From Thalia democratica (Eukaryota), in NCBI GenBank assembly GCA_965202585.1, contig OZ241829.1:25172001-25236000 (forward strand): a stretch of DNA of 64,000 nucleotides, in the 5' to 3' direction. Below, piece after piece: positions 2,743 through 64,000 of the stretch. A program made the translations under genes and the position numbers. The notes under the pieces are model-generated. The model ran no database searches, was not told the origin of the DNA, and saw nothing but the letters and a program-made list of their open reading frames with translations. Every line of letters starts with the position of its first letter. Positions within the stretch are counted from its first letter, which is position 1.

Positions 2743-4314
2743 ATGGATTCTACAATTCCGCGAAAAATACAAAGACTTAAAGATGATTTTAGCCACTACA
2801 AAAACTTTAGTAAAGAGACACAAGCTAACCAAGAAGAACTACAAATTATAGATCAAAGTTCTGTGAAAGTTCTTTTAAACGGGGACTTCATTTTAACCGT
2901 CAACAAAGAAAAAATCACTGAAAAGTCTTCATATTTCCGAGCAATGCTGAGCACTCGTTTTATCAACCACAAATCTGATTTTGTCGAGGTGAACTTCAAC
3001 ACGAGTGTCAGCACATTCGAGCAAGTCATGGAGTTTCTCAACACAGGTTCAACTTGCATCGACTTCCTGAACTTGTTTGAAGTTTACAAGCTTTCATTGT
3101 ACTTGCAAGTGGAAGAGTTACTGCAGCTTTGCTTCGACTACTTTGTAGAAAACCTGAAACCAAAGTACTTAGAAGCTTATGAAGATTTTTTAGAAAAGTC
3201 TCAGCTCGATGACAGTGCACTTGGAGACATAGTTAATAACTTCAAAAAAAGTACCAGGCCATCAATACCAGGATTTTATGTTCTGAAGACAATAAAGAAC
3301 AAATGCTACATCAATATGTTGTCTGAAGATTTGAAAAAAGTTTACGAGGTACCAAATGCAGTAGTAGAGTACGAGTCACGTGTGGAAAGCGTTCAACTGG
3401 AAAAATTTAACAACAAACTTTTGTTTTGCGTAACATCAAAAAACCCACAATCAGTCAGTTCACTGCATGAATATGACATTATAAGAAACGAAATGAGAGA
3501 TGTCACTTCAATAAAAGACGGTCAAACTGTTATTTGTTCGGACAAAAATAACTTTTTCACAGCCAGCGTCGTTGAAGACGGTTTGAATAAAAGCTTAATA
3601 TCTTTAACAGTTTATGGTGTGAAGTACAGAAATGATGACATGAGTTTACAACTAACAAAAAGATTTCCGCCTTTTTTCGAAAAAGTTAAAAATCCCGCAA
3701 GTGAAGTTTTAAAACCAAATTTACTGTTCTCTCACACTGCTAATGACCAAGTGTATATTTTTTATTACGCTGGAAAACTCACGTGTGATGATTTGTACCT
3801 TGATAAAGTGTATTTGATGACGATATGTAAAAAATCCATGCTTTTAGTGAAAGCTGACAAACTTACAAACTTGATTTCAAAGCCGAAAAACAGCACGATG
3901 TCACTAAACGTCAAACAGAGGCGCTTCAGAAAGATGTTCACGCACAAACAAGAAGAAAAAGTGTACATTATGTTGAACGAACTGCACAATACGATCCTTG
4001 TTTTCGACTGCAACCCTTATTTTAAACATCCTTTCTACTTTAGCACAAAACAGATGCCTTACACTTTCGACTGCAATGTTCCAATCGCGACTAAAGAAGG
4101 AGTTTTGTATTCGATTGGTGTGCAAGGGGGCGGGTATACAGAAAGGAAAAGAAGGTTTGAAAAAGTGTGGGTTGAGACGAAGTCATACCAGTGCGAAAAC
4201 GATTTTCTTTTAGATGATAACAAGAAGATAAAGACTAATGAGATAGAAGTTAAAGATCGTAGGGATGTTGGCGTTATGGCGGCCTGTTATGTAAAAAATA
4301 ATTTTAAAATGTAA
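2743..4314 (+). CDS. Intronless BTB/POZ-domain protein (N-terminal BTB plus BACK-like helices, divergent beta-rich C-terminus; Kelch-like/CUL3 adaptor type), 523 aa
   Basis: Long ORF; VKVLLNGDFILTVNKEKITEKSSYFRAML...FEQVMEFLNTGSTCI...EVYKLSLYLQVEELLQLCFDY matches the BTB pattern (S.YF.AM, F..Y.G, A..LQ...L...C). AATAAA at about 4313-4318 overlaps the stop. Confidence 0.85.
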   Translation: MDSTIPRKIQRLKDDFSHYKNFSKETQANQEELQIIDQSSVKVLLNGDFILTVNKEKITEKSSYFRAMLSTRFINHKSDFVEVNFNTSVSTFEQVMEFLNTGSTCIDFLNLFEVYKLSLYLQVEELLQLCFDYFVENLKPKYLEAYEDFLEKSQLDDSALGDIVNNFKKSTRPSIPGFYVLKTIKNKCYINMLSEDLKKVYEVPNAVVEYESRVESVQLEKFNNKLLFCVTSKNPQSVSSLHEYDIIRNEMRDVTSIKDGQTVICSDKNNFFTASVVEDGLNKSLISLTVYGVKYRNDDMSLQLTKRFPPFFEKVKNPASEVLKPNLLFSHTANDQVYIFYYAGKLTCDDLYLDKVYLMTICKKSMLLVKADKLTNLISKPKNSTMSLNVKQRRFRKMFTHKQEEKVYIMLNELHNTILVFDCNPYFKHPFYFSTKQMPYTFDCNVPIATKEGVLYSIGVQGGGYTERKRRFEKVWVETKSYQCENDFLLDDNKKIKTNEIEVKDRRDVGVMAACYVKNNFKM

Positions 4315-6424: not shown

Positions 6425-6670
6425 CTTGAGCAGGGGCATGAGCAGGAGCAATTTGAGCAGGAGCAGTTCAAGGAGGGGCAGCTCGATAAGTAGTAACTCG
6501 AGTAGGAACAACTATAGCAAGGATCGAGCAAAGACAACTCGAACAGGAGCAACTTGAGTAAGGACAACTCGATCAGGGACAACTCGAGCAGGAACAACTA
6601 TAGCATGGACAACTTTAGCAAGAGCAAATCGAGCATGAGAAACTCAGGCAGGGGAAATTTATACAGGACC
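6425..6670 (+). repeat. 15-bp minisatellite (consensus about ctcgagcaggagcaa), about 16 degenerate units
   Basis: Visible 15-nt periodicity of ctcgag/cttgag...caa; a reverse-oriented relative lies at 44450-44578. Confidence 0.85.
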
Positions 6671-9741: not shown

Positions 9742-10165
9742 ATGCAAATCAGTGTCACTTTTTCCGTACTGCTAATCTGTTTGACCAGTAGTTCAGAATG
9801 CCTGAAGTGCTTCAACTGTACTGACGCGCCAACGGGCCCCGACGAGTGCAACTCGGAAACAACGAAGTTACAGGAAACGACTCGGGTTACTGCGTGTCGG
9901 CATCGTTCAGAAGCGTCCCCGATGCGCCGTTTGAGTGTGGAGAAAAGGAGTATTGTGTCGTGGTGCATCAGTAGAGAATTTTTCATGACGCATGGAACGT
10001 ACCGCATCTCTCTTAACGCAGTTTGACAGTGTCTTGCTCTGCAGGGGATTTTGTAACAGCGAGTTTGAGTTTGACGTTAACTCAGCTCAAGGACTCGGAA
10101 CAAACTTTTATATTATTGTCATGGTAGTTTTTGCCATTTATTACAGTTTGTTGTTTAAGTTGTGA
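9742..10165 (+). pseudogene. Ly6/uPAR (three-finger) GPI-anchored protein, disrupted by 2 frameshifts and 2 in-frame stops
   Basis: Frame 1: signal peptide + LKCFNCTDAPTGPDECNSET. Frame 2: NDSGYCVSASFRSVPDAPFECGEKEYCVVVHQ*RIFHDAWNVPHLS*RSLTVSCSAGDF. Frame 3 (10052-10165): CNSEFEFDVNSAQGLGTNFYIIVMVVFAIYYSLLFKL*, i.e. the terminal CN motif plus a hydrophobic GPI signal. AATAAA at about 10169. Probable 5'UTR intron 9632-9729 (GTAAGT...TTAG). Confidence 0.8.
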
Positions 10166-13908: not shown

Positions 13909-14090
13909 TATGATTTCTTAAAGTGGGCGATACCGCCCCTTAAAGTAATTTAGACGAAGGGGAAAATAAGTATTTAGGGGGGTAAAAAAGTGAACGGGCA
14001 ATTAACTAATATGGTGTATCATAAAGACGGGTGGTTATTTATTATATTGCTGCTAATGGGCGAGTATGAACATGAAACTGGGAAGCTCTG
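13909..14090. mobile_element. Degenerate hAT MITE (~180 bp)
   Basis: Eroded left end tatgatttcttaaagtgggcgataccgcccc, right end tgggaagctctg; flanks atctaact / ctctaact (7/8 TSD). Confidence 0.65.
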
Positions 14091-15010
14091 CTCTAACTAT
14101 ATAGTAAAATCATAGTCTAAAGTTTTGCAATTTTTTACAAACATGAAATGAAAAAGTTAGTTTTTGAAATAAATAAAGGCATTTAGTTATTCTCATAAAT
14201 TAGCATATTTGTATTATAAAGCTTAACTTATGATTACGAAGCTTAAACTTTGAGACTAAGATATATCTAAACTATTTGATCTAATAATTATGTATTTAAC
14301 TAATATGCGTTCATAGAACAACACTAAATTGCGCATTGAGCTTAATTATAAGAATATTTTGTTATTACGCAGTATTTTCTTACTACTTACTAATTAATAA
14401 AATATCTTAGCTACAAAGTTAGTTTTTATATGAAATTAATAAAACTAATGACCTCATTTGCTAGAAACTTTCCGTTAAAACAATTAATTTCTAATATATA
14501 TTATATATTGTACAATACCAATAGCTATAACATTATGATTTTTTTTTCTAATTTGATGTACAATTGTTTAAACAGCACAGAAAAAAAGTTTGAACAAAAC
14601 AGATTAAGGCAGTAGAATTGTTTTTTAATGCAATAGACTTACAGTCAATTTCAAGAAGTCATTTTAGTGAAAAATATACTTTTAGTCCGAACATAATAAT
14701 TAAATCCTAGACGACACATTTATAAATGTAGTTCAGTTTATAAGCATTTAAAAACATCAGAAAAGCTAATTTGTGAACGAGCTTTAACTAAGCACTGTAA
14801 AATTTAATAAACTTGTTTGAATACAACCACACCAGTAGCACGTTTTAAATACCAATAATATGTATTGTGACACACACTTTAAAGCTTTAGTTCTCTTGCA
14901 ATCTTTCTTTTTGAAATAAAGTTTACATACTTAACTATTACAGAACAGTCATTAGGCGCTCATACACTTGTGAGCTAAACATGATTAAACACAACTTTTG
15001 TTTTTAACAG

Positions 15011-15056
15011 AACTCACCAGCAAGACATCGATCCGGAAACAATGAAGCCAACGGAG
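15011..15056 (+). CDS. Small exon (contains ATG at 15042: MKPTE) upstream of the acidic-helix exon
   Basis: tttttaacAG acceptor at 15009-15010, gagGTAAAT donor at 15057; open frame; phase 0 matches the next exon at 15291. Confidence 0.6.
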
Positions 15057-15290
15057 GTAAATATGATTAAAAAAAATTTAGCCAAATGATTTTGCTTTAT
15101 TGTAAATCCAATTGAAGGTGACGCTAACTCGCGACCTTACAACTTACTAATTCTTTGTCAAAAACCTTTTACAAAATGACTTGAGATCAAAACTCAAAAA
15201 AGTTCTGCTTGTATACTCCTTAAAAAACCACTAAAAAACATAAAGCAGTATTGGTGTTTAAGCTGAAAAACTCCTAGTAGTTTCCTGTAG

Positions 15291-15527
15291 AAAACTTTAT
15301 TTCAACAAACATCAGAAGGAAGCGGCGATTGGAGGGACCAGCAGGTTGGGTCGAGGAGGGCGAGCAGCTCCTCCTACATGGATCAGCTGAACGAGTTCAT
15401 GGAGGACATCGACGAGATCATGGAGGACATCGAAGAGGAGTACCAGGAGTGGAAGGAGGAGTTTCCCCAGTACGCCAAGGAAGGTTCGGATTGCTTGTGT
15501 AGATGTAGCTGTAGGCACAGTGGTTGA
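15291..15527 (+). CDS. Exon encoding an acidic amphipathic helix and Cys-rich tail (KTLFQQTSEG...MDQLNEFMEDIDEIMEDIEEEYQEWKEEFPQYAKEGSDCLCRCSCRHSG*)
   Basis: tttcctgtAG acceptor at 15289-15290; GC-rich codon bias against an AT-rich background; TGA at 15525-15527; AATAAA at 15623. A possible internal phase-1 donor AAG|GTTCGG follows 15483. Missed by the ORF track on this strand. Confidence 0.7.
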   Translation, partial: KTLFQQTSEGSGDWRDQQVGSRRASSSSYMDQLNEFMEDIDEIMEDIEEEYQEWKEEFPQYAKEGSDCLCRCSCRHSG

Positions 15528-17200
15528 TTAGTGTTTGTGTGGGTAGATCAGTGATAAAAAGTAGTTTTAAAAACAGTAACAACGTAGCTGATAAATTTGT
15601 AGCTTGTTAAAAACACAGCTTGAATAAACATTGTTTAAAGTTCGTTTTTTTAATAATTTATTCGTAACAATGTTTTGGTCATTTTTATTTGTGCTTGCAC
15701 AATTCCTTTAAAATTTCGATGAAAATAAATTAGTGCTTTATAACTTTAATGAAATATATGCTACTTTGTATGCGGGCGTGGCGGAACAAAACTTTAAAGT
15801 TAGTTTTAGTAATTTTAAATAAAGCTAGAACAAGCTATTAGTTGTTGGGATGAAAAAATTGATTTTGTGTTTATTGCAATCTCATTAAAAGTTAAGATTT
15901 TAATTAAATTTTTGCTTAATCATATTTTTGTTGAAGTGTGAACAAGTTGTACGCGGTTTAATTTTCAAGCTGATGATATGTGAGTAATTTTATAAACGCG
16001 TAACACACTTTGTCATTTTCAGTAACCAACAAAAGTTTTAAAGTAGTTTGGTGTGAAACGTTTTGAACTTAATCAGTCTGTAGCTTTAATAAACGAGTTT
16101 ATTTGCAAAAGAATGGAAGCAAAAGTTAAAATTTCTAACAACTAAAAAGGTTACTATGGTTTCTAACATATAGTTATAAAAATAAAGTTTAAAACGTAAG
16201 GATATTTAAAACATATCTAATGCAAACTTAAAAAAAAAATGTCCTAGGGTACAATAGTATATCTCGTAAAGAAAGAATGATATAAAGGTGTTAGAACTTA
16301 ATTGTTTTTATATAGAAATCGTAACTTTTTAATGCCAAAAACAAATTAATTTGTTTTTAAGACGTTAATAAATGTAAATTCCTAAACTCTGAGTAGTTTT
16401 AGCTAATAATTTAAAAAAAAAATATGCTATTCAGTTTTCTAAAAGCAGTTGGAATTTTTTTTTTAATTTTAAAACTTTATGTTACTGTATTACACCAAAT
16501 TTTTTTCCGATAATAAAATACTGTTATACATACTTACGTCATTATGCAACAACATGTATTACACATGAAATGTTGATTTTGTAATGTTAAAATTTAGTTA
16601 TGAAGTTTCAAACACACCGTTTTTTCAAAGTTTTCAAGTTTACAACAAGTAAAGCAAATAGGTTCTTCGTTTGATTTTTTGTTTGATTGCTATTAACATA
16701 CGCTACACAAATAAGATTACTACAAAGTTATCGAACTATACTGGTTTTGTTTGGTAGCTTTTTTGTACTTTAATTTATTATACAAGCTCAAAGAAGTAAA
16801 TAATTAAGTGAAAGTTATTTTTTAAGTGTAACTTTGCCTAAAAAAGTAATTTTACAAGACTATTAGAAGTTATATAAGTCTGTAATTAAAATTTTGATGT
16901 CCAAATCAATAAAATAAGTTTTTTTAAATGTAAACATACATTAAAGAAACTAAGAAAAATTTGTTTTGAATTAGATTCAAGTAAACAGGCAAAATTTAAA
17001 TTAAACTTAAAAAGGGGGAATAAATTGATTCTTATTTGAAACTATTTCAAGTTGATAGGACTGTTTTAAAAATTACTTCGGCAAATAAGTTTTTAGAAGA
17101 AAAAAATTTGTAAATACTTTTACTGTTTTTTATTTAAAGTCGTACACTTGCAAACTTAATTTAAAACTGAACAACACAAACACATCACTAATTAACGCAG

Positions 17201-20200
17201 ATGAAAAAACCACTAGCAAAAGCACGTTTTCCAAGAAGACCACTGTGAAGACATCGGGAACGAGCGAAGGTGCGAACCCCCAGGCATCTAGAACGACAAC
17301 GACAACCACAACAACAACAACGCAACAGGTCTCCGGGCCGGGTAAGACGCAGACCAGCGGACAAACAACTACTCAAACTTCGCAGGAAAGCCAAATCAGC
17401 CAGAGCTCAGTGGAAAAAAGTTCGGGCGGTGTTAAAACGTTCCAAGGTACAGGGTCTCAATCTTCAAGCTCGAAAACAACAGTACAAAGTTTGAAGTCAG
17501 TGGAGACGAGTGAAAACAAATCAGGTCAAACACAATCTGGCGGTGGTAAAACGAATCAAGAAAATAAAGGTAGTAAACAAACGTCTCAAAGTACAACAAT
17601 TAATGCAGTAGGTGAAAATTCATCTGACACTAAAGAAGTTGATAAAACTGAAGAAAAGAAGACTACAGCAAATACAGAAACTACTGCAAATACAAAAACT
17701 ACAGAAACAACTAAAACAGAGACTGCTCAAGAAAGCAAAACTACAGAAACTACAGAAACAGCCGAAGCAAAGAATACAGAAACTACAGAAACAACTGCAA
17801 ATACTGAAACTACAGAAACAACTGAAACAAAGACTGCTCAAGAAAGCAAAAGTACAGAAACAAATGCAAATACAGAAACAACAGAAACTACAGAAACAAC
17901 CGAAGCAAAGAATACAGAAACTACTGCAAATACAAAAACTACAGAAATAACTGAAACAAAGACTGCTAAAGAAAGCAAAACTGCAGAAACTGCTAAATCT
18001 ACAGAAACAACTGCAAATACAGAAACAACTGCAAATACTGAAACTACAGAAACAACTGAAACAAAGACTGCTCAAGAAAGCAAAACTAAAGAAACAACTG
18101 CAAATACAGAAACAACTGAAACAAAGAATACTGCAGAAAGCAAAACTACAGAAACAACTGCAAATACAGAAACAACTGAAACAACTAAAGCAAAGAATAC
18201 TGCAGAAAGCAAAACAACAGAAACTACAGAAACAACCGAAGCAAAGAATACAGAAACTACTGCAAATACAGAAAGTAAGGAAACAACTGAAACAAAGACT
18301 GCTGAAGAAAGCAAAACTACTGCAACAACTTCAAACACAGAAACAACTGCAAATAAAGAAACTACTGAAACAACTGAAACAAAGACCGCTGAAGAAAGCA
18401 AAACTACAGAAACTACAGAAAATACAGCAACTACTGCGAATACAGAAACTACAGAAACAACTGAAACAAAGACTGCTAAAGAAAGCAAAACTGCAGAAAC
18501 TGCTGAAACTACAGAAACAACTGCAAATACTAAAACTACAGAAACAACTGAAACAAAGACTGCTCAAGAAAGCAAAACTAAAGAAACAACTGCAAATACA
18601 GAAACAACTGAAACAAAGAATACTGCAGAAAGCGAAACTACAGAAACAACTGCAAATACAAAAACAACTGAAACAACTAAAGCAAAGAATACTGCAGAAA
18701 GCAAAACAACAGAAACTACAGAAACAACCGAAGCAAAGAATACAGAAACTACTGCAAATACAGAAAGTAAGGAAACAACTGAAACAAAGACTGCTGAAGA
18801 AAGCAAAACTACTGCAACAACTTCAAACACAGAAACAACTGCAAATAAAGAAACTACTGAAACAACTGAAACAAAGACCGCTGAAGAAAGCAAAACTACA
18901 GAAACTACAGAAAATACAGCAACTACTGCGAATACAGAAACTACAGAAACAACTGAAACAAAGACTGCTAAAGAAAGCAAAACTGCAGAAACTGCTGAAA
19001 CTACAGAAACAACTGCAAATACTAAAACTACAGAAACAACTGAAACAAAGACTGCTCAAGAAAGCAAAACTAAAGAAACAACTGCAAATACAGAAACAAC
19101 TGAAACAAAGAATACTGCAGAAAGCGAAACTACAGAAACAACTGCAAATACAAAAACAACTGAAACAACTAAAGCAAAGAATACTGCAGAAAGCAAAACA
19201 ACAGAAACTACAGAAACAACCGAAGCAAAGAATACAGAAACTACTGCAAATACAGAAAGTAAGGAAACAACTGAAACAAAGACCGCTGAAGAAAGCAAAA
19301 CTACTGAAACAACTTCAAACACAGAAACAACTGCAAATAAAGAAACTACTGAAACAACTGAAACAAAGACTGCTGAAGAAAGCAAAACTACAGAAACTAC
19401 AGAAAATACAGCAACTACTGCGAATACAAAAACTACAGAAACAACTGAAACAAAGACTGCTAAAGAAAGCAAAACTGCAGAAACTGCTGAAACTACAGAA
19501 ACAACTGCAAATACTGAAACTACAGAAACAACTGAAACAAAGACTGCTCGAGAAAGCAAAACTAAAGAAACAACTGCAAATACAGAAACAACTGAAACAA
19601 AGAATACTGCAGAAAGCAAAACTACAGAAACAACTGCAAATACAGAAACAACTGAAACAACTAAAGCAAAGAATACTGCAGAAAGCAAAACAACAGAAAC
19701 TACAGAAACAACCGAAGCAAAGAATACAGAAACTACTGCAAATACAGAAAGTAAGGAAACAACTGAAACAAAGACTGCTGAAGAAAGCAAAACTACAGAA
19801 ACTACAGAAAATACAGCAACTACTGCGAATACAGAAACTACAGAAACAACTGAAACAAAGACTGCTAAAGAAAGCAAAACTACAGAAACTACAGAAACTA
19901 CAGAAACAACTGCAAATACAGAAACTACAGAAACAACTGAAACAAAGACTGCTGAAGAAAGCAAAACTGCAGAAACTGCTGAAACTACAGAAACAATTGC
20001 AAATACTAAAACTACAGAAACAACTGAAACAAAGACTGCTGAAGAAAGCAAAACTACAGAAACTACAGAAAATACAGCAACTACTGCGAATACAGAAACT
20101 ACAGAAACAACTGAAACAAAGACTGCTAAAGAAAGCAAAACTGCAGAAACTGCTGAAACTACAGAAACAACTGCAAATACTAAAACTACAGAAACAACTG

Positions 20201-23200
20201 AAACAAAGACTGCTCAAGAAAGCAAAACTAAAGAAACAACTGCAAATAAAGAAACAACTGAAACGACTGAAACAAAGAATAGTGCAGAAAGCAAGACTAC
20301 AGAAACAACTGCAAATACAGAAACAACTGAAACAACTAAAGCAAAGAATACTGCAGAAAGAAAAACAACAGAAACTACAGAAACAACCGAAGCAAAGAAT
20401 ACAGAAACTACTGCAAATACAGAAAGTAAGGAAACAACTGAAACAAAGACTGCTGAAGAAAGCAAAACTACTGCAACAACTTCAAACACAGAAACAACTG
20501 CAAATACAGAAACTACTAAAACAACTGAAACAAAGACTGCTGAAGAAAGCAAAACTACAGAAACTACAGAAAATACAGCAACTACTGCGAATACAGAAAC
20601 TACAGAAACAACTGAAACAAAGACTGCTAAAGAAAGCAAAACTGCAGAAACTGCTGAAACTACAGAAACAACTGCAAATACTAAAACTACAGAAACAACT
20701 GAAACAAAGACTGCTGAAGAAAGCAAAACTAAAGAAACAACTGCAAATACAGAAACAACTGAAACAGCTAAAGCAAAGAATACTGCAGAAAGCAAAACAA
20801 CAGAAACTACAGAAACAACCGAAGCAAAGAATACAGAAACTACTGCAAATACAGAAAGTAAGAAAACAACTGAAACAAAGACTGCTGAAGAAAGCAAAAC
20901 TACTGCAACAACTTCAAACACAGAAATAACTGCAAATAAAGAAACTACTGAAACAACTGAAACAAAGACTGCTGAAGAAAGCAAAACTACAGAAACTACA
21001 GAAAATACAGTAACTACTGCGAATACAGAAACTTCAGAAACAACTGAAACAAAGACTGCTAAAGAAAGCAAAACTGCAGAAACTGCTGAAACTACAGAAA
21101 CAACTGCAAATACTAAAACTACAGAAACAACTGAAACAAAGACTGCTGAAGAAAGCAAAGCTAAAGAAACAACTGCAAATATAGAAACAACTGAAACAAC
21201 TGAAACAAAGAATACTGCAGAAAGCAAAACTACAGAAACAACTGCAAATACAGTAACAACTGAAACAACTAAAGCAAAGAATACTGCAGAAAGCAAAACA
21301 ACAGAAACTACAGAAACAACCGAAGCAAAGAATACAGAAACTACTGCAAATACAGAAAGTAAGGAAACAACTGAAACAAAGACCGCTGAAGAAAGCAAAA
21401 CTACAGAAACTACAGAAAATACAGCAACTACTGCGAATACGGAAACTACAGAAACAACTAAAACAAAGACTGCTGAAGAAAGCAAAACTGCAGAAACTGC
21501 TGAAACTACAGAAACAACTGCAAATAATAAAACTACAGAAACAACTGAAACAAAGACTGCTCAAGAAAGCAAAACTAAAGAAACAACTGCAAATACAGAA
21601 ACAACTGAAACGACTGAAACAAAGAATACTGCAGAAAGCAAAACTAAAGAAACAACTGCAAATACAGAAACAACTGAAACAATTGAAACAAAGACTGCTG
21701 AAGAAAGCAAAACTACAGAAACAACTGCAAATACAGAAGCAACTGAAACAACTAAAGCAAAGAATACTGCAGAAAGCAAAACAACAGAAACTACAGAAAC
21801 AACCGAAGCAAAGAATACAGAAACTACTGCCAATACAGAAAGTAAGGAAACAACTGAAACAAAGACTGCTGAAGAAAGCAAAACTACAGAAACTACAGAA
21901 AATACAGCAACTACTGCGAATACAGAAACTACAGAAACAACTGAAACAAAGACTGCTGAAGAAAGCAAAACTGCAGAAACTGCTGAAACTACAGAAACAA
22001 CTGCAAATAAAGAAACTACAGAAACAACTGAAACAAAGACTGCTGAAGAAAGCAAAAGTACAGAAACTACAGAAAATATAGCAACTACTGCGAATACAGA
22101 AACTACTGAAACAACTGAAACAAAGACTGCTAAAGAAAGCAATACTGCAGAAACTGCTGAAAATACAGAAACAACGGCAAATAATAAAACTACAGAAACA
22201 ACTGAAACAAAAACTGCTCAAGAAAGCAAAACTAAAGAAACAACTGCAAATACAGAAACAACTAAAACGACTGAAACAAAGAATACTGCAGAAAGCAAAA
22301 CTACAGAAACAACTGCAAATACAGAAACAATTGAAACAACTAAAGCAAAGAATACGGCAGAAAGCAAAACAACAGAAACTACAGAAACAACCGAAGCAAA
22401 GAATACAGAAACTACTGCAAATACAGAAAGTAAGGAAACAACTAAAACAAAGACTGCTGAAGAAAGCAAAACTACTGCAACAACTGCAAACACAGAAACA
22501 ACTGCAAATACAAAAACTACTGAAACAACTGAAACAAAGACTGCTGAAGAAAGCAAAACTACAGAAACTACAGAAAATACAGCAACTACTGCAAATACAG
22601 AAACTACAGAAACAACTAAAACAAAGAATACTGCAGAAAGCAAAACAACAGAAACTACAGAAACAACCGAAGCAAAGAATACAGAAACTACAGAAACTAC
22701 TGCAAACACAGATAGTAAGGAAACAACTGAAACAAAGAATACTGCAGAAAGCAAAACTACAGAAACAACTGCAAATACTGAAACAACTGAAACAACTAAA
22801 GCACAGAATACTGCAGAAAGCAAAACTACAGAAACTACAGAAACAACCGAAGCAAAGAATACAAAAACTACTGCAAAAACAGAAAGTAAGGAAACAACTG
22901 AAAAAAAGACTGCTGATGAAAGCAAAACAACAGAAACAACTGCAAATACAGAAACAACTAAAGCAAAGAATACTGCAGAAAGAAAAACAACAGAAACTAC
23001 AGAAACAACCGAAGCAAAGAATACAGAAACTACTGCAAATACAGAAAGTAAGGAAACAACTGAAACAAAGACTGCTGAAGAAAGCAAAACTACTGCAACA
23101 ACTGCAAACACAGAAACAACTGCAAATACAGAAACTACTGAAACAACTGAAACAAAGACTACTGAAGAAAGCAAAACTACAGAAACAACTGCAAATACAG

Positions 23201-25647
23201 AAACAACTGCAAATACAGAAACTACTGCAAATACAGCAACTACTGCAAATACAGAAACTACAGAAACAACTGTAACAAATAATACTGCAGAAAGCAAAAC
23301 TACAGAATCTACTGAAACTACAGAAACAACTGCAAATACAGAAACTACAGAAACAACTGAAACAAAGACTGCTGAAGAAAGCAAAACTACAGAATCTACT
23401 GAAACTACAGAAACAACTGCAAATACAGAAACTACAGAAACAATCGAAATAAAGACTGCTCAAGAAAACAAAACTACAGAAACAACTGAAAATACAGAAA
23501 CTACAGAAACAACTGAAACAAAGACTGCTCAAGAAAGCAAAACTAAAGAAACTACAGAAACAACTGCAGATACAGAAACTACAGAAACAACCGAAACAAA
23601 GACTGCTGAAAAAAGCAAAACAACAGACACTACTGAAACTTCAGAAACTACTAAAACAAAGAAAACTGAAAAAAGCAAAACTACAGAAACTACAGAAAAT
23701 ACAGAAACTACTGAAACAACTGAAACAAAGAATACTGAAAAAAGCAAAACTACAGAAACTACAGAAAATACAGAAACTACAGAAACAACTGAAACAAAGA
23801 ATACTGAAAAAAGCAAAACTACAGAAACTACAGAAAATACAGAAACTACTGAAACAACTGAAAAAAAGACAGCTGAAGAAAGCAAAACTAAAGAAACTAC
23901 AGAAACTACAGAAACAACTGCAAATAGAGAAACTACTGAAACAACTGAAACAAAGACTGCTGAAGAAATCAAAACTACAGAATCAACTGCAAATACAGAA
24001 ACAACTGCAAATACAGAAACTACAGAAACAACTGAAACAAAGACTGCTGAAGAAAACAAAACTACAGAAACTACTGAAACTACAGAAACAACAGCAAATA
24101 CTGAAACTACAGAAACAACTGAAACAAAGACTGCCCAAGAAAGCAAAACTACAGAAACAACTGCAAATACAGAAACAACTGCAAATACAGAAACTACAGA
24201 AACAACTGAAACAAAGACTGCTGAAGAAAGCAAAACTACAGAAACTACTGAAACTACAGAAACAACTGAAACAAAGAATGCTGAAGAAATCAAAACTACA
24301 GAAACTACTGAGACTACAGAAACTACTGAAACTACAGAAACAACTGAGACAAAGACTGCTGAAACTACAGAAACAACTGAAACAAAGAGTGCTGAAGAAA
24401 TCAAAACTACAGAAACAACTGCAAATACAGAAACTACAGAAACAATTGAAACAAAGACTGCTGAAGAAAGCAAAACTACAGAAACTACTGAAACTACAGA
24501 AACAACTGAAACAAAGAATGCTGAAGAAATCAAAACTACAGAAACTACTGAAACTACAGAAACTACTGAAACTACAGAAACAACTGTAAATACCGAAACT
24601 ACAGAAACAACCGAAACAAAGACTGCTGAAGAAAGCAAAACTACAGAAACTACTGAAACTACAGAAACAACTGCAAATACAGAAACTACAGAAACAACTG
24701 AAACAAAGACTGCTGAAGAAATCAAAACTACAGAAACAACTGCAAATACAGAAACTACAGAAACAACTGAAACAAAGACTGCTCAAGAAAGCAAAACTAC
24801 AGAATCTACTCAAACTACAGAAACAACTGCAAATACTGAAACTACAGAAACAACTGAAACAAAGACTGCTGAAGAAAGCAAAACTACAGAAACTACTGAA
24901 ACTACAGAAACAACTGCAAATACAGAAACTACAGAAACAACTGAAACAAAGAATGCTGAAGAAATCAAAACTACACAATCTACTGAAACTACAGAAACAA
25001 CTGCAAATACAGAAACTACAGAAACAACTGAGACAAAGACTGCTGAATCTACAGAAATAACTGAAACAAAGACAGCTGAAGAAATCAAAACTACAGAAAC
25101 AACTGCAAATACAGAAACTACAGAAACAACTGAAACAAAGACTGCTGAAGAAAGCAAAACTACAGAAGCTACTGAAACTACAGAAACAACTGCAAATACA
25201 GAAACTACTGAAACAACTGAAACAAAGACTGCTGAAGAAAGCAAAACTACAGCAACTACTGAAGCTACAGAAACTACTGAAACAAAAGAAACTACTGCAA
25301 ATACAAAATCTACAGAAACAACTGAAACAAAGACTGCTGAAGAAAGCAAAACTACAGAAACTACTGAAACTACAGAAACAACAGCAACTACTGAAACTAC
25401 AGAAACAACAGCAACAACTGTGACAACTACGGTTGTAGTTGAAGAGAATGAGGTTACTGAAACAACCCAGCCTCAAACAATTGAGGAAGCCCAGGAGCAA
25501 ATTGAGAAGCAAGTCGATGAGATCAAAGATAGATTGAGGAGCATGTTCGCTGAATTCGAAGACGATGAAGATGTCGGCGAAGATGACGGAGTAAACCCTT
25601 CAGAACCACCTCAACCTTCTAAAGGTCCGCCTTGTGCTATTATGTAA
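17201..25647 (+). CDS. Giant terminal exon: ~2800-aa Thr/Glu/Lys/Ala/Asn-rich repeat protein ending in an acidic helix and CaaX box (CAIM)
   Basis: Uninterrupted 8.4-kb frame; branch point/acceptor ctaattaacgcAG at 17188-17200 (phase 1; the ORF-track GTG start at 17245 is internal); unique C-terminus EEAQEQIEKQVDEIKDRLRSMFAEF...KGPPCAIM*; AATAAA at 25754. Confidence 0.85.
17660..25420 (+). repeat. Coding tandem repeat: 9-nt (TET) base unit organised into higher-order units including a 492-bp (164-aa) period
   Basis: acagaaact/acagaaaca/actgaaaca units; the marker motif tg(c/a)aacaacttcaaacac recurs at 18321, 18813 and 19305 (exactly 492 apart). Confidence 0.95.
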
Positions 25648-27050
25648 ATATTCACAAGGTGTTTTAGTTCAAGCCATAAATAGGTTTACTTTTTTTTATT
25701 TTACAAGTTTTTATATTACGTTATATAAGTAAAGTTTTCGGAATAGTGTACGTAATAAATAATTTTGTAAATGTTTAAAATGTTTGTTTTTCGAGGTTAC
25801 AAAACAATTTTTAGTCAAACTAAACTTTATTTTTACTTAGTGAAAAAATGCTTATAAAGATTATTTTCCTCCCAATCTAGTTTTTCTAAGCTTTTTTTTA
25901 GACTTCATTGATTCTATACTGTCTTGTCCTTGTGTCAAGTTTTAAAACTAAATTATTTTTGGTTTTTAATTGTGTTTTGTAAGCTTATCAGAAAAAAACT
26001 AGTCAAAGAAAGTTTTATAAGATTAACTTGTTCTTCTTTGTTTTCCTTTACTAAATTGTTATTAAACTATAAGTTTCTCTAATTTTCCTTTAAAAATAGA
26101 CGTTTAAGTTTGCTAAAAAACACTGTATTTTTAAGAATATAAGTTAATGAAAATGTAAATGAGATTTTATAATTCACTGGCTTTGTTATTATTTTATTAT
26201 TAACTAAATATTCTTTTTGAGCTAAAGCTAACTGTTCTCACAAACTGCTACTTTTTAACTTGAAAGATACAATTTAGTAATAAAAAACTTGACAACGTTG
26301 TATTTTATTTGCTATCAAAAAATTAAATTAAAAAAAAATCTTATCAATAGTTTAAACAACTTCTTAAAGTTTAGATTTAGGTTTTTAAGATTAAACTTTG
26401 TTTTATAAGACTAATTCTCCTCCCATATTAGTTTAATAAAACAAACTACTTATCTATAACTTTAAAACTGAAATTAAACGATATTTAAAACTTTAATTGC
26501 AAGTTTTAAAACAAAAAAAGTTGTGTTTTATCAAGTCGTTACATATTTTACATTATGTGTGTTTTTATGCAGATAAATGTAGTACTTGTATTTTTTAATT
26601 TTTTTCAAAGATGAAAAAATAATTATATGATAATTTTCATATTTTCCACCAATAATTATTAATATTTTTTTACATATTATTATTATTGCATGTTTATTGT
26701 TAATACTATGGTATAATAAACTTATTATCAAAAATGAATTACATAGTACATATACTTATTTTACTTATAATGTTAGCATTATCATACAATTAAGCTTATT
26801 TCTTATTATTTTTTACGATTATGCATAAATTAAAAAAATAAGTTATAACCTTTTATCTGAAATTTTTTTTTATGAAGTTTAATGTGTGAATTAAAGCGTT
26901 TGCTTTCACAAAAAGTAATTTAATAGGCTATAAATTTACTGATTTATCTTTGCCAGTGCTTTTTTATTGCTTATTTCAACACATTTTTATATTTCTTACT
27001 ACAACAGTTTTAAAGCAAATGAAGCTCGTGAAAGATTTTTTTCTTTAATT

Positions 27051-31894: not shown

Positions 31895-33331
31895 ATGCTT
31901 CAAAAAAGCCTCACATGGGTAACGGCGGTGGTTGAAAACTTATTCTTCGCCGGTATCGTGTTCGGGTGGGCCAACCTGTACCCGGTGCTGGTGAGAGAAA
32001 ACTTCTTTTCCGAAAGCTGCCATCATTCAAAAACGTCACTAAACTTCACAATGACGTCACCGAACGTCACAGTTCCCTGCGAGTCGCAGAAGCAGTCGCT
32101 CTCTTCCGTCTTCGTCGCCAGCACGTCGCTGGGCCTCTTTTCCTCGGTGCTGGTCGGCGCGGCGCTGGACCGCTTCGGCATCTGGTCGGTGCGGACGGTG
32201 CTGGTCAACATGGCGGTGTGCAGTCTGCTGGCCACCGCCCGCTTGTCAGCAGGGGACTCGCACCTGCTGACGGTCACAGTTTCGGTTTTGCACGTGAGCG
32301 GGCTGGGGCTGCACATGACCAACCTGCAAGTTGCCAACATTTTCAACGAGGACAGGAACATGTACGTGGCGTTCGTGTCGGGCGCCCTCGGGTCCGGGTC
32401 GGCCTCTTTCCTCATCCTCAACTACCTCTACTTTGAATTGAACGTCAGCTTCGAGGTCCTGTTCACGGCGTTCGCCTGCTGCTACTTCCTGCTGAACCTC
32501 AGGACGTTCCTGCTCACTCCCAGGTTTCGCGCTCCTGAGAACGCTCCGGAAGACTACAAGTACGGGTACAAGCAGCTTGGTAACTCGAGCAGATCGGACT
32601 ATCAAATGGTTGAAAAAACAAAGCAGAAAGGGGAGAAAACAAAACTTGTTGAAAAGGACACTTTCAAACAGTTCATCACTAAAAAAGTTTTCATCTTCAC
32701 TGTTTTATCAAACGCGGTGTTGAACTTCACAAGCATGATGTACATATCGGTGTTAAACGACTTCATGACGAGCCTACTCGAGCGGAACGAAGAAGTCGAC
32801 TTTTATGTCAATGTGTTTGGAATAATCCAGTTCGTGGGGTTCGTTTTCTCTCCGCTTAGCGGCGCCATAACGCAGTACTTCAAGCGAACCTCAAATGAAG
32901 AGGAACGGACCGCCGCGATACGGTCGTGCACCGTCGGCCTGTTCGTCGGTGGGTTCTGCGCCGTCGTCATGGAAACGTGCATGGTGCTCCCCTCGCCTCG
33001 CCTCCAGCTGGTTTCAATGTCGGCGCAGGTTCTTAGCAAGGCCTTCTTCGTCAGCAGCAGCAACGCGCTCATCAGCGTCGTTTTTCCCGCCAAAATGTTC
33101 GGCAAGCTATACAGCGTGATGGCGGTCTGCCAGGCATTGATGCTCCTCCTTCAGCAGCCGCTGATGACGTTTTTGACGGAAACTTTGAACGGCGACTTTG
33201 TCATTTTCAACTCGATTGTTTCCCTGGTGTCCTTGTTGACGCTGGCACAGCCGGTCTACGTGGCCTTCTTTTATTTGAAAAAGCAAAACGGGTTTTACGA
33301 TAAGACGAACGAAGAAAGTTTGCTGAGATGA
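31895..33331 (+). CDS. Intronless SLC43-family (LAT3/LAT4/SLC43A3-like) MFS transporter, 478 aa
   Basis: N-terminal TAVVENLFFAGIVFGWANLYPVL matches SLC43 TM1; MFS motif G...DRFG in loop 2-3; LHMTNLQVANIF; about 12 hydrophobic segments with a central loop; VFPAKMFGKLY in the C-terminal half. Exact orthologue not assignable. Confidence 0.9.
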   Translation: MLQKSLTWVTAVVENLFFAGIVFGWANLYPVLVRENFFSESCHHSKTSLNFTMTSPNVTVPCESQKQSLSSVFVASTSLGLFSSVLVGAALDRFGIWSVRTVLVNMAVCSLLATARLSAGDSHLLTVTVSVLHVSGLGLHMTNLQVANIFNEDRNMYVAFVSGALGSGSASFLILNYLYFELNVSFEVLFTAFACCYFLLNLRTFLLTPRFRAPENAPEDYKYGYKQLGNSSRSDYQMVEKTKQKGEKTKLVEKDTFKQFITKKVFIFTVLSNAVLNFTSMMYISVLNDFMTSLLERNEEVDFYVNVFGIIQFVGFVFSPLSGAITQYFKRTSNEEERTAAIRSCTVGLFVGGFCAVVMETCMVLPSPRLQLVSMSAQVLSKAFFVSSSNALISVVFPAKMFGKLYSVMAVCQALMLLLQQPLMTFLTETLNGDFVIFNSIVSLVSLLTLAQPVYVAFFYLKKQNGFYDKTNEESLLR

Positions 33332-48937: not shown

Positions 48938-50107
48938 ATGCTTGAAAACATAACAAAAAGCTTAAAAGGTAGACAACTGAATATCGAGTTCAACCCGGAG
49001 AACTTTGTCAACGTCAATTATTTCAACGACTCCATGATGAAAAGAATGCGAATCGAACACAAAGTTTCGCACGGGTCGGAACCTTGGGACCAGCATGTCC
49101 AGTGCACATCGTGGAACAGCAACGGGTTCTTGTTTGCCTGCGGGAAGTACGAAGGAGGAGTGCGGATATTCAAACCGTTCCTAAACACCGAAGCTAGCGC
49201 CGTACCGGTCCCCGATGAGCACTACTTGACTGACGCGTTGTTTTTGCATCAACACGACAACCTCATTGCCGTTTGCTCGAGAAGCAACAGGTCGTTCTTT
49301 TGGAACCAACCAAACGGACTGGAATCAGGAAACTACGTGAGAATATGGGACGTTCGGACAAAAAGTGTTGTAAGGTCTCACAATTTCAAAGGCTTCGTCA
49401 AACAAGTTGCAACTTCCAAAGCTCTCCCCAACTGCGTTTGGTTCAATATTGATCATAGAACGAAGCAAATAGCAGAAGCAGACATAAGATCCCCTTCATA
49501 CAGATGCTTGCAACTAAAAAACACTGAAAGTAACACAAGTTTATTTCAATCAGGAAGTTTTGACATCAATCCTGTTGACGAAGTCACAATCGTCGTCAAC
49601 GACGGAAATAAGATAAATTTTTACGATCGAAGAATGATGAGTTTTTCTAGAGCAAACCATCCTTTTAAAACTATCGACACAAGCTCACTGAGCGGCGACA
49701 GGTCTTTCATCGTGAAGGTCAAGTACAACCCAAGCGGAAACAAGTTGTTCGTCACGAGCTCACATAGCTTCAAAGTCTCGCAGTACGTCGCGCCCGCAGC
49801 GAACACCGACGTCGAAAGCTTGCGGGAGTTCACGTTTCGGGACCAGTTGGCGGTTGCCACCGTGACCAAGCACCCGTCTTTTCTCGGGGAAAATCACGTG
49901 CTGTTCGACACGTACTTTAGAAACTACTCCGTTGTGTTCAACCACGAAGACATGCGTTACGTCGGCAAAATAAATCTTTTAGGTCAATCGAATTATTTTT
50001 CTGACATAAGCAGCTTGCCGCACCCATTTTATTGCCTGATCGCTTCAACAAACCAAGACACGACAAACTTTATCACTCCAACATTCGCTACAACGGATGA
50101 AATGTAG
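48938..50107 (+). CDS. Intronless divergent WD40-repeat protein (first repeat DCAF8/WDTC1-like), 389 aa
   Basis: HVQCTSWNSNGFLFACGKYEGGVRIF resembles the first WD repeat of DCAF8/WDTC1; VRIWDVRTK, AEADIRS and INFYDRR are WD-end motifs; GC-richer codons than the flanks. Confidence 0.8.
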   Translation: MLENITKSLKGRQLNIEFNPENFVNVNYFNDSMMKRMRIEHKVSHGSEPWDQHVQCTSWNSNGFLFACGKYEGGVRIFKPFLNTEASAVPVPDEHYLTDALFLHQHDNLIAVCSRSNRSFFWNQPNGLESGNYVRIWDVRTKSVVRSHNFKGFVKQVATSKALPNCVWFNIDHRTKQIAEADIRSPSYRCLQLKNTESNTSLFQSGSFDINPVDEVTIVVNDGNKINFYDRRMMSFSRANHPFKTIDTSSLSGDRSFIVKVKYNPSGNKLFVTSSHSFKVSQYVAPAANTDVESLREFTFRDQLAVATVTKHPSFLGENHVLFDTYFRNYSVVFNHEDMRYVGKINLLGQSNYFSDISSLPHPFYCLIASTNQDTTNFITPTFATTDEM

Positions 50108-57984: not shown

Positions 57985-58986
57985 CTAGCTAATAGCTTGC
58001 TTCCAATTCATCAACAGAAATTTGTTCCTATGTCTGCAACTGCCCATGAGTTCGGATTTTTTGTTGATACAGTTGTTACTTGCTTGTAATATCTTGAGGG
58101 CTTCTTTCAAGCAAAGCTTGCATGTTGTTTTTCCTGGTTGGTGTTTGTTTACTTTTTCTAGGATCTTCCAATTCAATTTGTAATCCTCTCCTTCGTTTTT
58201 CAATTTGTGAATTAATTTTGATAGTTCTGTTGAATTAACGTATTTATTGTAGTTTCTGTTATCAGGTTTGCAATTGATTGTTGTATTGTGCGTTGAAATT
58301 CTTTTCTTTAATTGGTTTGCAGTTATTCCAATATATGTTTTGGTTTCGTTTTTTGCGCTTACTGAAGCTTCATATATGACGTTTTCAGTTCTACAATTGC
58401 CACCTTTCAGGGGGCATTTATTTTTGTCCCTGCAATTGCACGTCTCATCTGTGGTTTTTTCTTTATTCAACAGTTTTTTGTTGTGGCTTTTGATTGTCAT
58501 TTCGATATTTGGCATACAGCTGTAACTTAGCTTTATGCAGTTGCTGTTGACATACTTATTTAGTTTGCTTTCTTTGCTAAAATGCTTCTTTATTATTTTT
58601 AAGAATTTGTTTCCCACATTTGTTTTCACTGAACAGCAAAACGGTGGGTTGAACCATATACATTTTCTTTTTCTTTTTCTCTTTTTCACAGTTGTTTCAT
58701 TGGTTATTTTTGTATAATTTATGTCATGACTGTATCCATTTAGTTTTAACGCTTCATTATATTCTTTTTTTATACTGTCAAATAGTTTTTTACTGCTTGA
58801 ATTTTTGGCTAATCTATTTTCTATCATCTTTGGGATTTGTTTGATAATTGCTGGTGGATGGTTAGAATTTGCATTTACATAATTGATTCTGTTGTTTGGT
58901 TTTCTGTATGGGAAGAAGCTGTGTTTTTTTAGATTTAAGTTTAGGTCCAGGAAGTTTATTTGAAACGCTGGGTTTTCGATGATTAT
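57985..58986 (-). CDS. Penelope-like RT C-terminus/thumb + GIY-YIG endonuclease (fragment)
   Basis: The frame stays open 53 codons upstream of the ORF-track ATG: INFLDLNL...FPYRKPNN..YVNANSNHPPAIIKQIP. Then WFNPPF, KLSYSCMPN, CNCR..CPL.G.C, VIYEA...YIG...KKRISTH, and CKLCLKE: a Naiad/Neptune-type PLE layout. Confidence 0.92.
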   Translation of the reverse strand: MIIENPAFQINFLDLNLNLKKHSFFPYRKPNNRINYVNANSNHPPAIIKQIPKMIENRLAKNSSSKKLFDSIKKEYNEALKLNGYSHDINYTKITNETTVKKRKRKRKCIWFNPPFCCSVKTNVGNKFLKIIKKHFSKESKLNKYVNSNCIKLSYSCMPNIEMTIKSHNKKLLNKEKTTDETCNCRDKNKCPLKGGNCRTENVIYEASVSAKNETKTYIGITANQLKKRISTHNTTINCKPDNRNYNKYVNSTELSKLIHKLKNEGEDYKLNWKILEKVNKHQPGKTTCKLCLKEALKILQASNNCINKKSELMGSCRHRNKFLLMNWKQAIS

Positions 58987-61900: not shown

Positions 61901-62392
61901 TTACAATAACCAGTTTAAAGCTGCTATTTGTATTCACAAAGTTAGTTTTATTTTTCAGCTTGTTTTTAATCAAGTTAAATACAAAACAAGAAAGATAGTT
62001 TTATTTTTGAACAAAGCAAAATTAATTAACCACAAAAAAAGATGTCGATATGTTTATAAAAATAATACTTAATAAACAACTTTACGAAAAGTATATAAAA
62101 AAGATAATAAAAATTTACAATTTGTTGCATAGTTGAAAATTAATTAAACTTTATCTATAGAATTTTGGTATGTAGTTTTAACATACCATTGAACATATCT
62201 TACAGATAACAAGTATAATATTATTAAACTTTCAGTTTTTACGGAAGAAAGGTTGTTATTAAAATAACTTAATCAACAAAATCGGCGAAAGTCTGCAGAA
62301 CAAGTCCGGACTTTCGTTTGCCGTGAGACAAGCTCAAATTTAACAAAAGGGTTGATCATGCCAATTCGATCATCAGACCACAAGTTTCGGTA

Positions 62393-62435
62393 GACTGAGA
62401 CCGGTTTCGTCCTTATTAGGACTCATCAGTCAGTC
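62393..62435 (-). ncRNA. Type I hammerhead ribozyme (minus-strand arm of the palindrome)
   Basis: Exact reverse complement of 62470-62512. Confidence 0.92.
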
Positions 62436-62469
62436 ACAACCGAAAAACGACTACAAGTTTTTCGGTTGT

Positions 62470-62512
62470 GACTGACTGATGAGTCCTAATAAGGACGAAA
62501 CCGGTCTCAGTC
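62470..62512 (+). ncRNA. Type I hammerhead ribozyme (plus-strand arm of the palindrome)
   Basis: gactga-CTGATGA-gtcc(taataa)ggac-GAAA-CCGG-TC/tcagtc: perfect core, 4-bp stem II, minimal palindromic stem III ACCGGT, GUC cleavage triplet (cut after 62506), 6-bp stem I extendable by tttcggt/accgaaa (62460-62466 / 62514-62520). Confidence 0.93.
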
Positions 62513-64000
62513 TACCGAAACTTGTGGTCTGATGATCGAATTGGCATGATCAACCCTTTTGTTAAAATAACTTACGTATAAATTTGTTTTAACGTTTAAA
62601 AAAAACTTTCTTATCTATTTTTTATATTATAACTAGTGCTTATTGTTAACGAAAAATGTATATTACACATTGTAAATACTGTTTATTTGTTTTTAACTTA
62701 ATTCTTATTATTATAAACTTTTAAAATCTGTTAACGGTTTACAACTTGTTAAATATTTTTAAGCATAAAATGTTGCTTATTATGCAACAAAGTTCTTTAT
62801 ACGTTTTTTTATTTCATATTAAAAAATTTGTAAACCATTTATACATTTTTTCTTTTCGCACGATTTAAATAAAGTATAAAACTATTGACACTTGTTGAAT
62901 GCCTTATAAAGTTCGCTTCCTTTTTCAAGTACAAATTACGTACTTCCGTTTTCATGAAGTTTTTCAAGTCACATGTAGAATTCATTTTGTTTGGGCTGTT
63001 TTTTAATTTTACTTCACGTAATACACAAAGTAAAGTTAGTATGAAAATATTAACAGAGCTTTGCGCAAGTAAAGCTACTGTCCATATTAGATTCAATAAT
63101 ATTTAGGCAATTATGTTATGTATTACAGTAACGTTTTCAAACAAATCCTTTAATTTTTAAAACAGCTTCAAAAAGCATTCAGCTTAGCTTTTTTCAACCA
63201 TTTTAGAGTAGTTTAACTGATACTGTTCTTCAAAGGCGCTAAAGAAATTAAATAGAAATGCGGTACTACATACAATCAAATAAAACATACTAAACTGAAA
63301 TTAATGAACTTATTTGTGTTTATTTAACTTCTGTCTGATCATTTCCATCTAAACAAAACCTTTTTTCATAATCTAAGAAAGTTATAAATACATTACTTTT
63401 ACTAACAACTTTTAAATAAGTAATTATTTAAATTTTGTTTTTAAATAAAATTTATTTAAAATTTTACTACTAAAACGCTCTTATACACCTACACCTAAAA
63501 AACATAAAATGTTGGTTATTAAAAAAAAGTGCAAACTTGTTTCTGAGCTTAATAGTTTTTATTATGTCTTAATTTTTATATAATGGTTGTACTGAGTTAA
63601 TCAAGATTCTTAATTACTTACAAAATTGATATATTGTTTAAATACGTTTTACTACGAAACCTTCGTTTGAACAGGTTATTTTTCCAGTGGGTTTTAAAGC
63701 AATAGGTATAATATGTAAAAAAATTGAAAAGAAAAAAAAGTGTGTTATTATAACTAACCATGATTTGTAAAATATTAAGTCGTTAAAGTAATAAGTTGTA
63801 AAAAATACACCGATACAAAAAAAAAAAAAAATAACTAATATAACTACAAGTTTACGTTGATTTAGTTTCGGAATAAACAATGCGACCTGCTAGTTTAGAT
63901 TGCAATGTGACTAAACCGTTATTTTTTAAAATACCCTACAACTTAACATAGTTAATCAAAGGTTACTAAGCATGCTTTTGTTTTTTTCAAAAAAAAAAAT

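Follow-up and report, generated by a model that had tools for sequence, protein, structure and literature searches.

The stretch analysed here (the window) comprises 64,000 nucleotides of the Thalia democratica genome (assembly GCA_965202585.1, contig OZ241829.1, positions 25,172,001 to 25,236,000, forward strand); positions below are counted from its first letter. Its plus strand carries a predicted gene of at least two exons, with a product of about 2,850 residues. The layout from the N- to the C-terminus is a predicted acidic amphipathic helix of ~30 residues, a S/T/G/Q-rich linker of ~150 residues, ~2,600 residues of repeats, a second predicted amphipathic helix, an acidic Pro-rich linker and the tetrapeptide Cys-Ala-Ile-Met (CAIM), a CaaX box. 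The best reading, adopted tentatively, is a disordered polyanion of the cytosol that is farnesylated and serves as a tether or spacer.

The window is AT-rich, with a G + C content (GC) of 22–30% in most 2-kb bins, and contains no N bases. The plus-strand frame to which 17203 belongs has no stop between 17089 and the TAA at 25645–25647. Positions 17201–25647 (plus strand) form a single open exon of ~2,815 codons without a stop. The exon begins with a non-repeat, low-complexity, S/T/G/Q-rich linker of ~150 residues (17201–17656), which includes a run of ten Thr and along which GC at third codon positions (GC3) falls from ~0.57 to 0.25. It continues with the tandem array encoding ~2,600 residues of T/E/K/A/N/S modules (17657–25419), a transition leaving the array (25420–25479; VVVEENEVTETTQPQTIEEA), a predicted C-terminal helix of ~27 residues (25480–25560; predicted local distance difference test, pLDDT, 80–87), a flexible, acidic, Pro/Gly/Ser-rich linker of low pLDDT (25561–25632) and the CaaX box with the TAA stop (25633–25647), all on the plus strand. 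Open reading frames (ORFs) of the minus strand, up to 832 residues long, were rejected as a by-product of the repeat.

Several frames of the repeat DNA are stop-poor, and therefore length alone proves little. Single-base changes that create a stop were counted per frame across 17650–25420 and compared with the stops present. The real frame of the array has no stops for 898 single-base paths to a stop; in the three other near-open frames, 10 stops face 1618 paths, 8 face 759 and 12 face 626. By the rates of these other frames, the real frame would be expected to contain 5–17 stops. The array runs without a frameshift across 7.8 kb. The absence of stops where 5–17 are expected, the lack of a frameshift and the unique, coding-like flanks argue for a maintained, real gene and not for a chance open frame.

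A giant of T/E/K/A/N/S repeats with hardly any Pro, Cys or aromatic residues had been claimed in an earlier description of this DNA (the original prediction), and the composition counts agree. The listed ORF of 2,800 residues is composed of T (42.6%), E (21.7%), K (10.5%), A (9.3%), N (6.0%) and S (5.0%), with nine Pro, one Cys, three Phe and no Trp or Tyr. The 2,610-residue core is 98% T/E/K/A/N/S (T 44.5%, S 4.3%); P (0%), G, C, F, L, M, W and Y are absent from it. Asn is followed by Thr, as had been noticed, at 139 of 168 positions (NTE 90, NTA 32, NTK 14, NTV 2, NTD 1). N-glycosylation sequons (N-x-S/T), correctly described as rare, occur at 7 of the 168 Asn. This low count is driven by three or four repeated motifs, and therefore is not independent evidence for either compartment and carries no weight; avoidance of sequons would, if anything, make more sense in the endoplasmic reticulum (ER). 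The net charge of the whole protein is −331. T-x-E motifs number 414, and classic CK2 sites 73.

The array has a 9-nt period (~898 copies) and a 492-nt super-unit (15.3 copies, 78% matches) in Tandem Repeats Finder. At the protein level it consists of ~95 modules ending in E-S/I/N-K; the commonest length is 29 residues, and 23, 22 and 12 are next among the commonest. The 5′ two-thirds are made mostly of 164-residue super-units, and the 3′ third mostly of 29-residue units. Two adjoining 492-bp units, 18190–18681 and 18682–19173, are 100% identical, which suggests that they arose by very recent duplication, by gene conversion or through a collapse in assembly. The array is therefore young or actively homogenised, and its exact length needs confirming. 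The ratio of nonsynonymous to synonymous change between super-units (dN/dS) is uninformative, the copies being either identical or out of register.

The start at the ATG of 17201–17203 was not upheld. This ATG lies out of the ORF frame, reading from it stops after 15 codons, and only an A7 in place of the A6 run would bring it into frame; it was rejected as the start codon. The first in-frame Met of the long frame occurs only in the tail. Position 17201 is therefore the start of an exon that follows ...cgcag, and a 5′ exon is needed.

The fine GC profile has a sharp GC-rich island at 15221–15610. The proposed first coding exon, 15378–15483 (plus strand), begins with an ATG that has A at −3 and G at +4, and consists of 35 codons and one base (phase 1). 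It has a GC3 of 0.89 over the 35 codons, ends in the donor AAG/GTTCGG at 15483 (a slash marks the splice site) and encodes an acidic amphipathic helix (MDQLNEFMEDIDEIMEDIEEEYQEWKEEF...). The proposed intron, 15484–17200 (plus strand), is 1,717 nt long. The only phase-1-compatible acceptor within 17089–17260 is cgcag/AT at 17200/17201 (phases counted by hand); the acceptor at 17139/17140 has the wrong phase for the upstream donors and was discarded. Joining 15378–15483 to 17201–25647 gives one clean ORF of 2,850 codons, and GC3 declines smoothly across the junction (0.80, 0.57, 0.50, 0.25, 0.10). GC3 falls just past the donor, from 0.89 before it to ~0.43 in the next 14 codons (hand count). The start of the proposed intron (15484–15560, plus strand) is G/T-rich, with TGTAG at 6-nt spacing and several resulting phase-1 GT sites; left unspliced past 15483, the exon reads on to ...GSDCLCRCSCRHSG-stop. 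Splicing of 15378–15483 to 17201 is the best gene model, with the ATG at 15378 as the putative start codon.

Further upstream, the GC-rich exon appears to start after a good acceptor, ...aacatcag/ (15315/15316), and its part 15316–15377 (plus strand) may be 5′ untranslated region (UTR) or continued coding sequence. A candidate 5′ mini-exon of 46 nt, 15011–15056 (plus strand), has a good acceptor, ttttgtttttaacag/, and a good donor, GAG/GTAAAT, and may be 5′ UTR or a coding extension. Its own ATG is out of the main frame; the compatible frame is open and without ATG. An ORF at 14011–14103 is a weak candidate for a signal-peptide exon. Its donor, ATA/GTAAAA, is a poor one, 42% of all GT sites scoring at least as high (−5.6), and hydrophobic ORFs beginning with ATG turn up about once in every kb of this AT-rich sequence.

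No signal peptide had been seen in any candidate upstream exon, and exon 15378–15483, now found, agrees with this: its 29-residue N-terminus is a confidently predicted helix with a net charge of −13. No signal peptide is present with the start at Met15378, in the mini-exon extension or after the ATG at 17201 (were the A6 run A7). A signal-peptide-like ORF at 9742 was rejected as exon 1 and is read as part of a separate small gene, a later frame of which ends in a hydrophobic tail. This gene (9742–10126, plus strand) has a signal-peptide-like start and a CLKCFNC motif, and its frame changes twice, which suggests small introns or a pseudogene. By eye, the tail of the later frame suggests a glycosylphosphatidylinositol (GPI) signal, and the Cys pattern looks Ly6/uPAR-like.

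Structures were predicted with AlphaFold from single sequences; the query for the upstream exon was 55 residues long. The N-terminal helix covers residues 17–48 of the 55 (pLDDT 93–95), from four residues before Met15378 to Phe29 of the model; the net charge of −13 belongs to the first 29 residues counted from Met15378. Its hydrophobic moment of 0.49 was reached by 0 of 2000 shuffles. The C-terminal 27-mer TIEEAQ...SMFAEF (25465–25545), with a net charge of −4, has the same moment of 0.49, which 0.4% of shuffles attained. Strong amphipathicity is thus predicted for the two terminal helical segments. Strands modelled in the repeat (pLDDT 30–60) were disregarded.

The product ends in ...SKGPPCAIM before the TAA, which agrees with the CaaX(M) terminus first described. 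The Cys at −4 (Cys2847) is the only Cys of the preferred 2,850-residue model. GC drops to background past the stop; between 25,650 and 31,800 no plus-strand open stretch of at least 45 codons has a GC3 above the background of 0.30. An apparent donor at the stop codon was discarded: GTAA arises automatically from ATG + TAA, and so is no evidence of a donor. An AATAAA at 25754–25759 (plus strand), 107 nt past the stop, is a possible polyadenylation signal, such hexamers being common here (~0.8 per 150 nt). CAIM is taken as the true C-terminus on these genomic features.

The view of this terminus as a farnesylation signal is supported, CAIM being a canonical box and identical to that of lamin B. 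In a yeast reporter based on Ydj1, human farnesyltransferase modifies it fully, and RCE1 or ZMPSTE24 can carry out the cleavage (PMC11152559). In CaaX boxes the Cys at −4 precedes two mostly aliphatic residues and a last residue on which the choice of enzyme depends, M, S, Q, A or C being suited to farnesyltransferase. The 24 residues before the CaaX Cys are P/G/S/D/E-rich, of low pLDDT and without secondary structure; this linker is predicted to be flexible and accessible, as prenyltransferase substrates need. Farnesylation of Cys2847 is proposed from the motif and its surroundings. The protein lacks a transmembrane segment and a GPI tail, as had been stated, the highest 19-residue Kyte–Doolittle mean being 0.30. 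Runs of at least three K/R, and K/R-K/R-x-K/R, are absent from the 2,850 residues, in a scan that covered these two patterns and left bipartite and non-classical nuclear localisation signals (NLSs) outside. There is therefore no classical monopartite NLS and no polybasic patch. From the Glu at the end of the helix through the CaaX Cys (26 residues) the net charge is −8.

The predicted protein is an orphan that belongs to none of the families tested. Protein sets of 5.8 billion and 1.84 billion sequences yielded no match for the termini, for the 85-residue tail within the full-length query, for the 75-residue tail (0 matches at E ≤ 0.001 among the 1.84 billion representatives), or for the whole exon product (8,000 scored candidates). 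No Pfam family scored above its curated cut-off with the whole ORF or with either end; the sole match was a sub-threshold FtsA_C on the tail (20.5 bits, cut-off 27.4). PDB sequences gave only a designed helical bundle (E 0.18). Rfam and tRNA scans found nothing. Five metagenome loci were rejected as spurious, being contigs of 63–71% GC that match only the acidic string DEDVGEDDGV. In a literature search on repeat strings, TTETTETTET was reportedly found in one paper, on DSS peptides derived from dentin phosphoprotein. A neighbouring gene bears on these negatives. The intronless WD40 beta-propeller gene at 48938–50107 (plus strand) has 11 relatives (best 79% identity), all on short metagenome contigs; one is from a marine (Tara) sample, and none from an annotated genome. 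The genome itself is absent from the protein collections, and the failure to find an orthologue of the repeat protein is therefore uninformative.

The cytosolic, farnesylated tether or spacer would work as follows. Synthesis would take place on free ribosomes, because no signal peptide is present in the best model. Cys2847 would be modified by farnesyltransferase; at the cytosolic face of the ER, the −AIM tripeptide would then be cleaved off and the newly exposed C-terminus methylated. Through the farnesyl group, the C-terminal end would be held at the cytosolic face of a membrane or in the lipid-binding pocket of a partner. In Ras-type targeting, a farnesyl group that has neither a polybasic stretch nor a palmitoylatable Cys near it binds weakly and with a bias to endomembranes, or acts as a handle for other proteins. 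Endomembranes or a partner protein are likelier sites, to judge by the tail, than the plasma membrane or a nuclear brush; the plasma membrane is disfavoured because a polybasic or palmitoyl second signal is lacking and the neighbourhood of the box is acidic. The repeat would act as a spacer, hydrated, with a strong negative charge and probably phosphorylated at many sites, and at most ~1 micrometre long when fully stretched. It would carry the N-terminal helix as a distal binding end, and so act as a long flexible tether or a repulsive brush. The membrane-tethered disordered brush of the original prediction is retained in part: it agrees with a best model that has no signal peptide, with the lack of transmembrane and GPI signals and with the CaaX box, but its placement on the inner face of the plasma membrane or nucleus is doubtful, with neither kind of K/R cluster sought, no second Cys and a charge of −8 before the box.

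Several points weigh against the cytosolic tether. The gene model is a prediction from genomic sequence. In the donor GTTCGG, position +3 is occupied by T, which is rare there; the generic score, 1.5, ranks the site among the top 5% of GT sites. A phase-1 donor with an equal score lies at 15510, and its use would lengthen the product by about nine residues, three of them Cys. The main frame is open for 20 codons upstream of ATG 15378, with a GC3 of 0.85; it is also open through the mini-exon at 15011–15056, and translation may start further upstream. The signal-peptide-like ORF at 14011–14103 is phase-compatible with that mini-exon. The 414 T-x-E motifs recall the S-x-E motif of secretory-pathway kinases, and classic CK2 sites number only 73. 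The preferred model has no second Cys for palmitoylation, and a lone farnesyl beside an acidic linker gives weak membrane binding. No orthologue was found, in protein sets or metagenomes, in which the CaaX box could be compared.

The main rival, considered unlikely, is a secreted or cell-surface polyanion, either a Pro-free mucin-like O-glycoprotein or a phosphophoryn-like phosphoprotein, with a signal exon upstream and a luminal, functionless CAIM. It would account for Thr-rich tandem repeats of mucin size, for the T-x-E motifs and for the open frame above ATG 15378 and through the mini-exon; (E-T-T)n is moreover a conservative variant of the (D-S-S)n of dentin phosphoprotein. The ORF at 14011–14103 (MVYHKDGWLFIILLLMG...) resembles a signal peptide, with a phase-0 GT at its end, but that donor is the poor one described above and hydrophobic ORFs of this kind are frequent here. 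The Pro-free repeat had been used as an argument against a mucin. The core is indeed without Pro, but lack of Pro is compatible with O-linked N-acetylgalactosamine (O-GalNAc): Pro-free Thr-rich stretches can carry it, and neutral Thr-rich stretches of fly glue mucins are glycosylated (PMC12776162). The conserved sequon of the GalNAc transferases, T/S-P-x-P, read with a proline pocket (bioRxiv 10.1101/2020.06.25.171371), is absent from the 2,610 residues, which is suggestive only. Cys-rich, VWD, SEA, transmembrane and GPI modules are likewise missing, and the sole Cys makes a perfect CaaX box at the exact C-terminus.

Other rivals keep the lipid and differ in where it acts, or deny the gene a function. 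A soluble farnesylated protein, with the lipid as a protein–protein handle as in PEX19, Spindly or CENP-E/F, is given a rather small probability. The absence of a second membrane signal, the acidic neighbourhood of the box and the two amphipathic helices, which suggest protein partners, fit it, as does the farnesyl-dependent protein binding reported for PEX19 (PMC5353646). No partner or known domain was identified, and sequence by itself cannot separate this version from the membrane anchor. A farnesylated nuclear-envelope or nuclear polyanion, lying lamin B- or Kugelkern-like at the inner nuclear membrane or resembling the acidic phosphoproteins Nopp140 and treacle, is very unlikely. The acidic Thr clusters alternating with K/A stretches recall Nopp140, and CAIM is the box of lamin B. 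Kugelkern is a lineage-restricted CaaX protein that acts on the nuclear membrane (PMC2947476). Against this, the 2,850 residues contain no classical monopartite NLS, Pfam finds no intermediate-filament rod or Ig fold, and a protein of ~300 kDa is barred from passive nuclear entry. The least probable reading is a 9-bp microsatellite expanded in a dead or very young gene, or an assembly artefact, with the open frame as a by-product of low complexity. The other array frames are also nearly open, with 8–12 stops per 2,590 codons, a pair of 492-bp units shows no difference, and no homologue was found in the searched sets; yet the real frame runs over 7.8 kb with no frameshift and with no stop where 5–17 are expected, the unique N- and C-terminal parts show the codon bias of coding sequence, confidently predicted helices and a motif placed precisely at the stop, and the upstream exon is in phase.

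If the cytosolic tether is true, Thr repeats of mucin scale are not limited to the secretory pathway, and a cell could equip the cytosolic face of a membrane with a polymer brush or tether, anchored by a lipid and tunable in charge. The lipid-anchored disordered proteins (paralemmin, MARCKS, GAP-43, BASP1) would be extended by an order of magnitude in length, and a natural test case would be at hand for entropic-spacer ideas. A bolder form of the proposal, somewhat doubtful as it stands, is a previously undescribed class, a cytoplasmic 'inside-out mucin': a farnesyl-anchored, micrometre-scale, Pro-free polyanionic Thr repeat that would coat or space an organelle or cortical membrane on its cytosolic side, or tether cargo through the distal acidic helix, with thickness and charge tunable by mass phosphorylation or O-linked N-acetylglucosamine (O-GlcNAc) modification of Thr. 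If a signal-peptide exon exists instead, this would be an unusual secreted protein, Pro-free, acidic and of mucin- or phosphophoryn-like type, and its CaaX box a coincidence.

Other features of the window are as follows. An intronless gene at 2743–4314 (plus strand) encodes a protein of 523 residues; a BTB/POZ domain (Pfam E 5e-7) lies at its N-terminus, and no domain is recognised in its C-terminal part. At 6425–6654 a tandem repeat of degenerate 15-nt units (GAGCAGGAGCAACTC-like) has stops in the plus-strand frames. An intronless gene at 31895–33331 (plus strand) encodes a transporter of the major facilitator superfamily of 478 residues, related to SLC43A3/ENBT1 (PDB 9l38, E 3e-43); with 42% GC and a GC3 of 0.74 amid 22–24% GC, it may be a retrogene or a compositional island. 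Its presence gives the genome an animal-like look. On the minus strand, a 280-residue ORF at 57985–58827 has Cys clusters and a YIGIT...ST H motif recalling the GIY-YIG nucleases of mobile elements, with no Pfam match. A perfect 110-nt inverted repeat with an 8-nt spacer at 62339–62566 forms a long hairpin, and may be an element resembling miniature inverted-repeat transposable elements or an assembly artefact. Two pairs of dispersed direct repeats of 60–86 nt and 83% identity, 47515–47600/51445–51530 and 43156–43215/54061–54120, are probably fragments of a short interspersed element.

Among known systems, the mucins (domains rich in Pro, Thr and Ser; Drosophila Sgs1 and Sgs3) have in common with the present protein kilobase-scale, rapidly homogenised, Thr-dominated repeats, low complexity and predicted disorder. 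The present protein differs in having no Pro in 2,610 residues, 22% Glu and a strong negative charge, in lacking Cys-rich, SEA, VWD and transmembrane modules, in having no signal peptide in the best model, and in its CaaX end. Dentin phosphoprotein (DSS) and Nopp140/treacle share with it period-3 hydroxyl/acid repeats (D-S-S there, E-T-T here), which would allow hierarchical phosphorylation and cation binding. The present protein has Thr in place of Ser, a CaaX end and no sequence homology to them; it lacks, unlike phosphophoryn, a signal peptide in the best model and, unlike Nopp140, a classical NLS.

Golgins such as GMAP-210 share the logic of the proposed tether, being very long and C-terminally anchored, with a short amphipathic motif at the far N-terminus. 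They are coiled coils with transmembrane, GRIP or GRAB anchors, whereas the present protein is predicted to be disordered, with a putative farnesyl anchor and an N-terminal helix too acidic for membranes. Lamin B has the identical CAIM tetrapeptide. Kugelkern is lineage-restricted and has a coiled-coil motif, an NLS and a CaaX box (PMC2947476); the present protein, apparently lineage-restricted too, likewise combines a helical N-terminal motif with a CaaX box. It differs from both in lacking a classical monopartite NLS, a rod and an Ig fold, in having a body of disordered repeat and not of coiled coil, and in having, against the rod, only two short predicted helices of ~27–30 residues.

GAP-43, CAP-23/BASP1 and MARCKS are functional relatives of paralemmin, an acidic, lipid-anchored protein. 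The architecture had been called unlike that of known families; it is unusual, but not unprecedented in kind, lipid-anchored acidic disordered proteins being known from paralemmin (PMC2148134). Paralemmin is an acidic, largely unstructured phosphoprotein of the cytoplasmic membrane face with CaaX lipidation, and resembles the proposed tether in this; it has a mass of 42 kDa, a cluster of three Cys (prenyl and palmitoyl), conserved cassettes and a Pfam family (PMC2148134). The present protein is about seven times longer and has a single Cys, tandem repeats and no Pfam match. Paralemmin is the closest described example, and the present protein would be a very large, repeat-built, lipid-anchored, acidic disordered protein.

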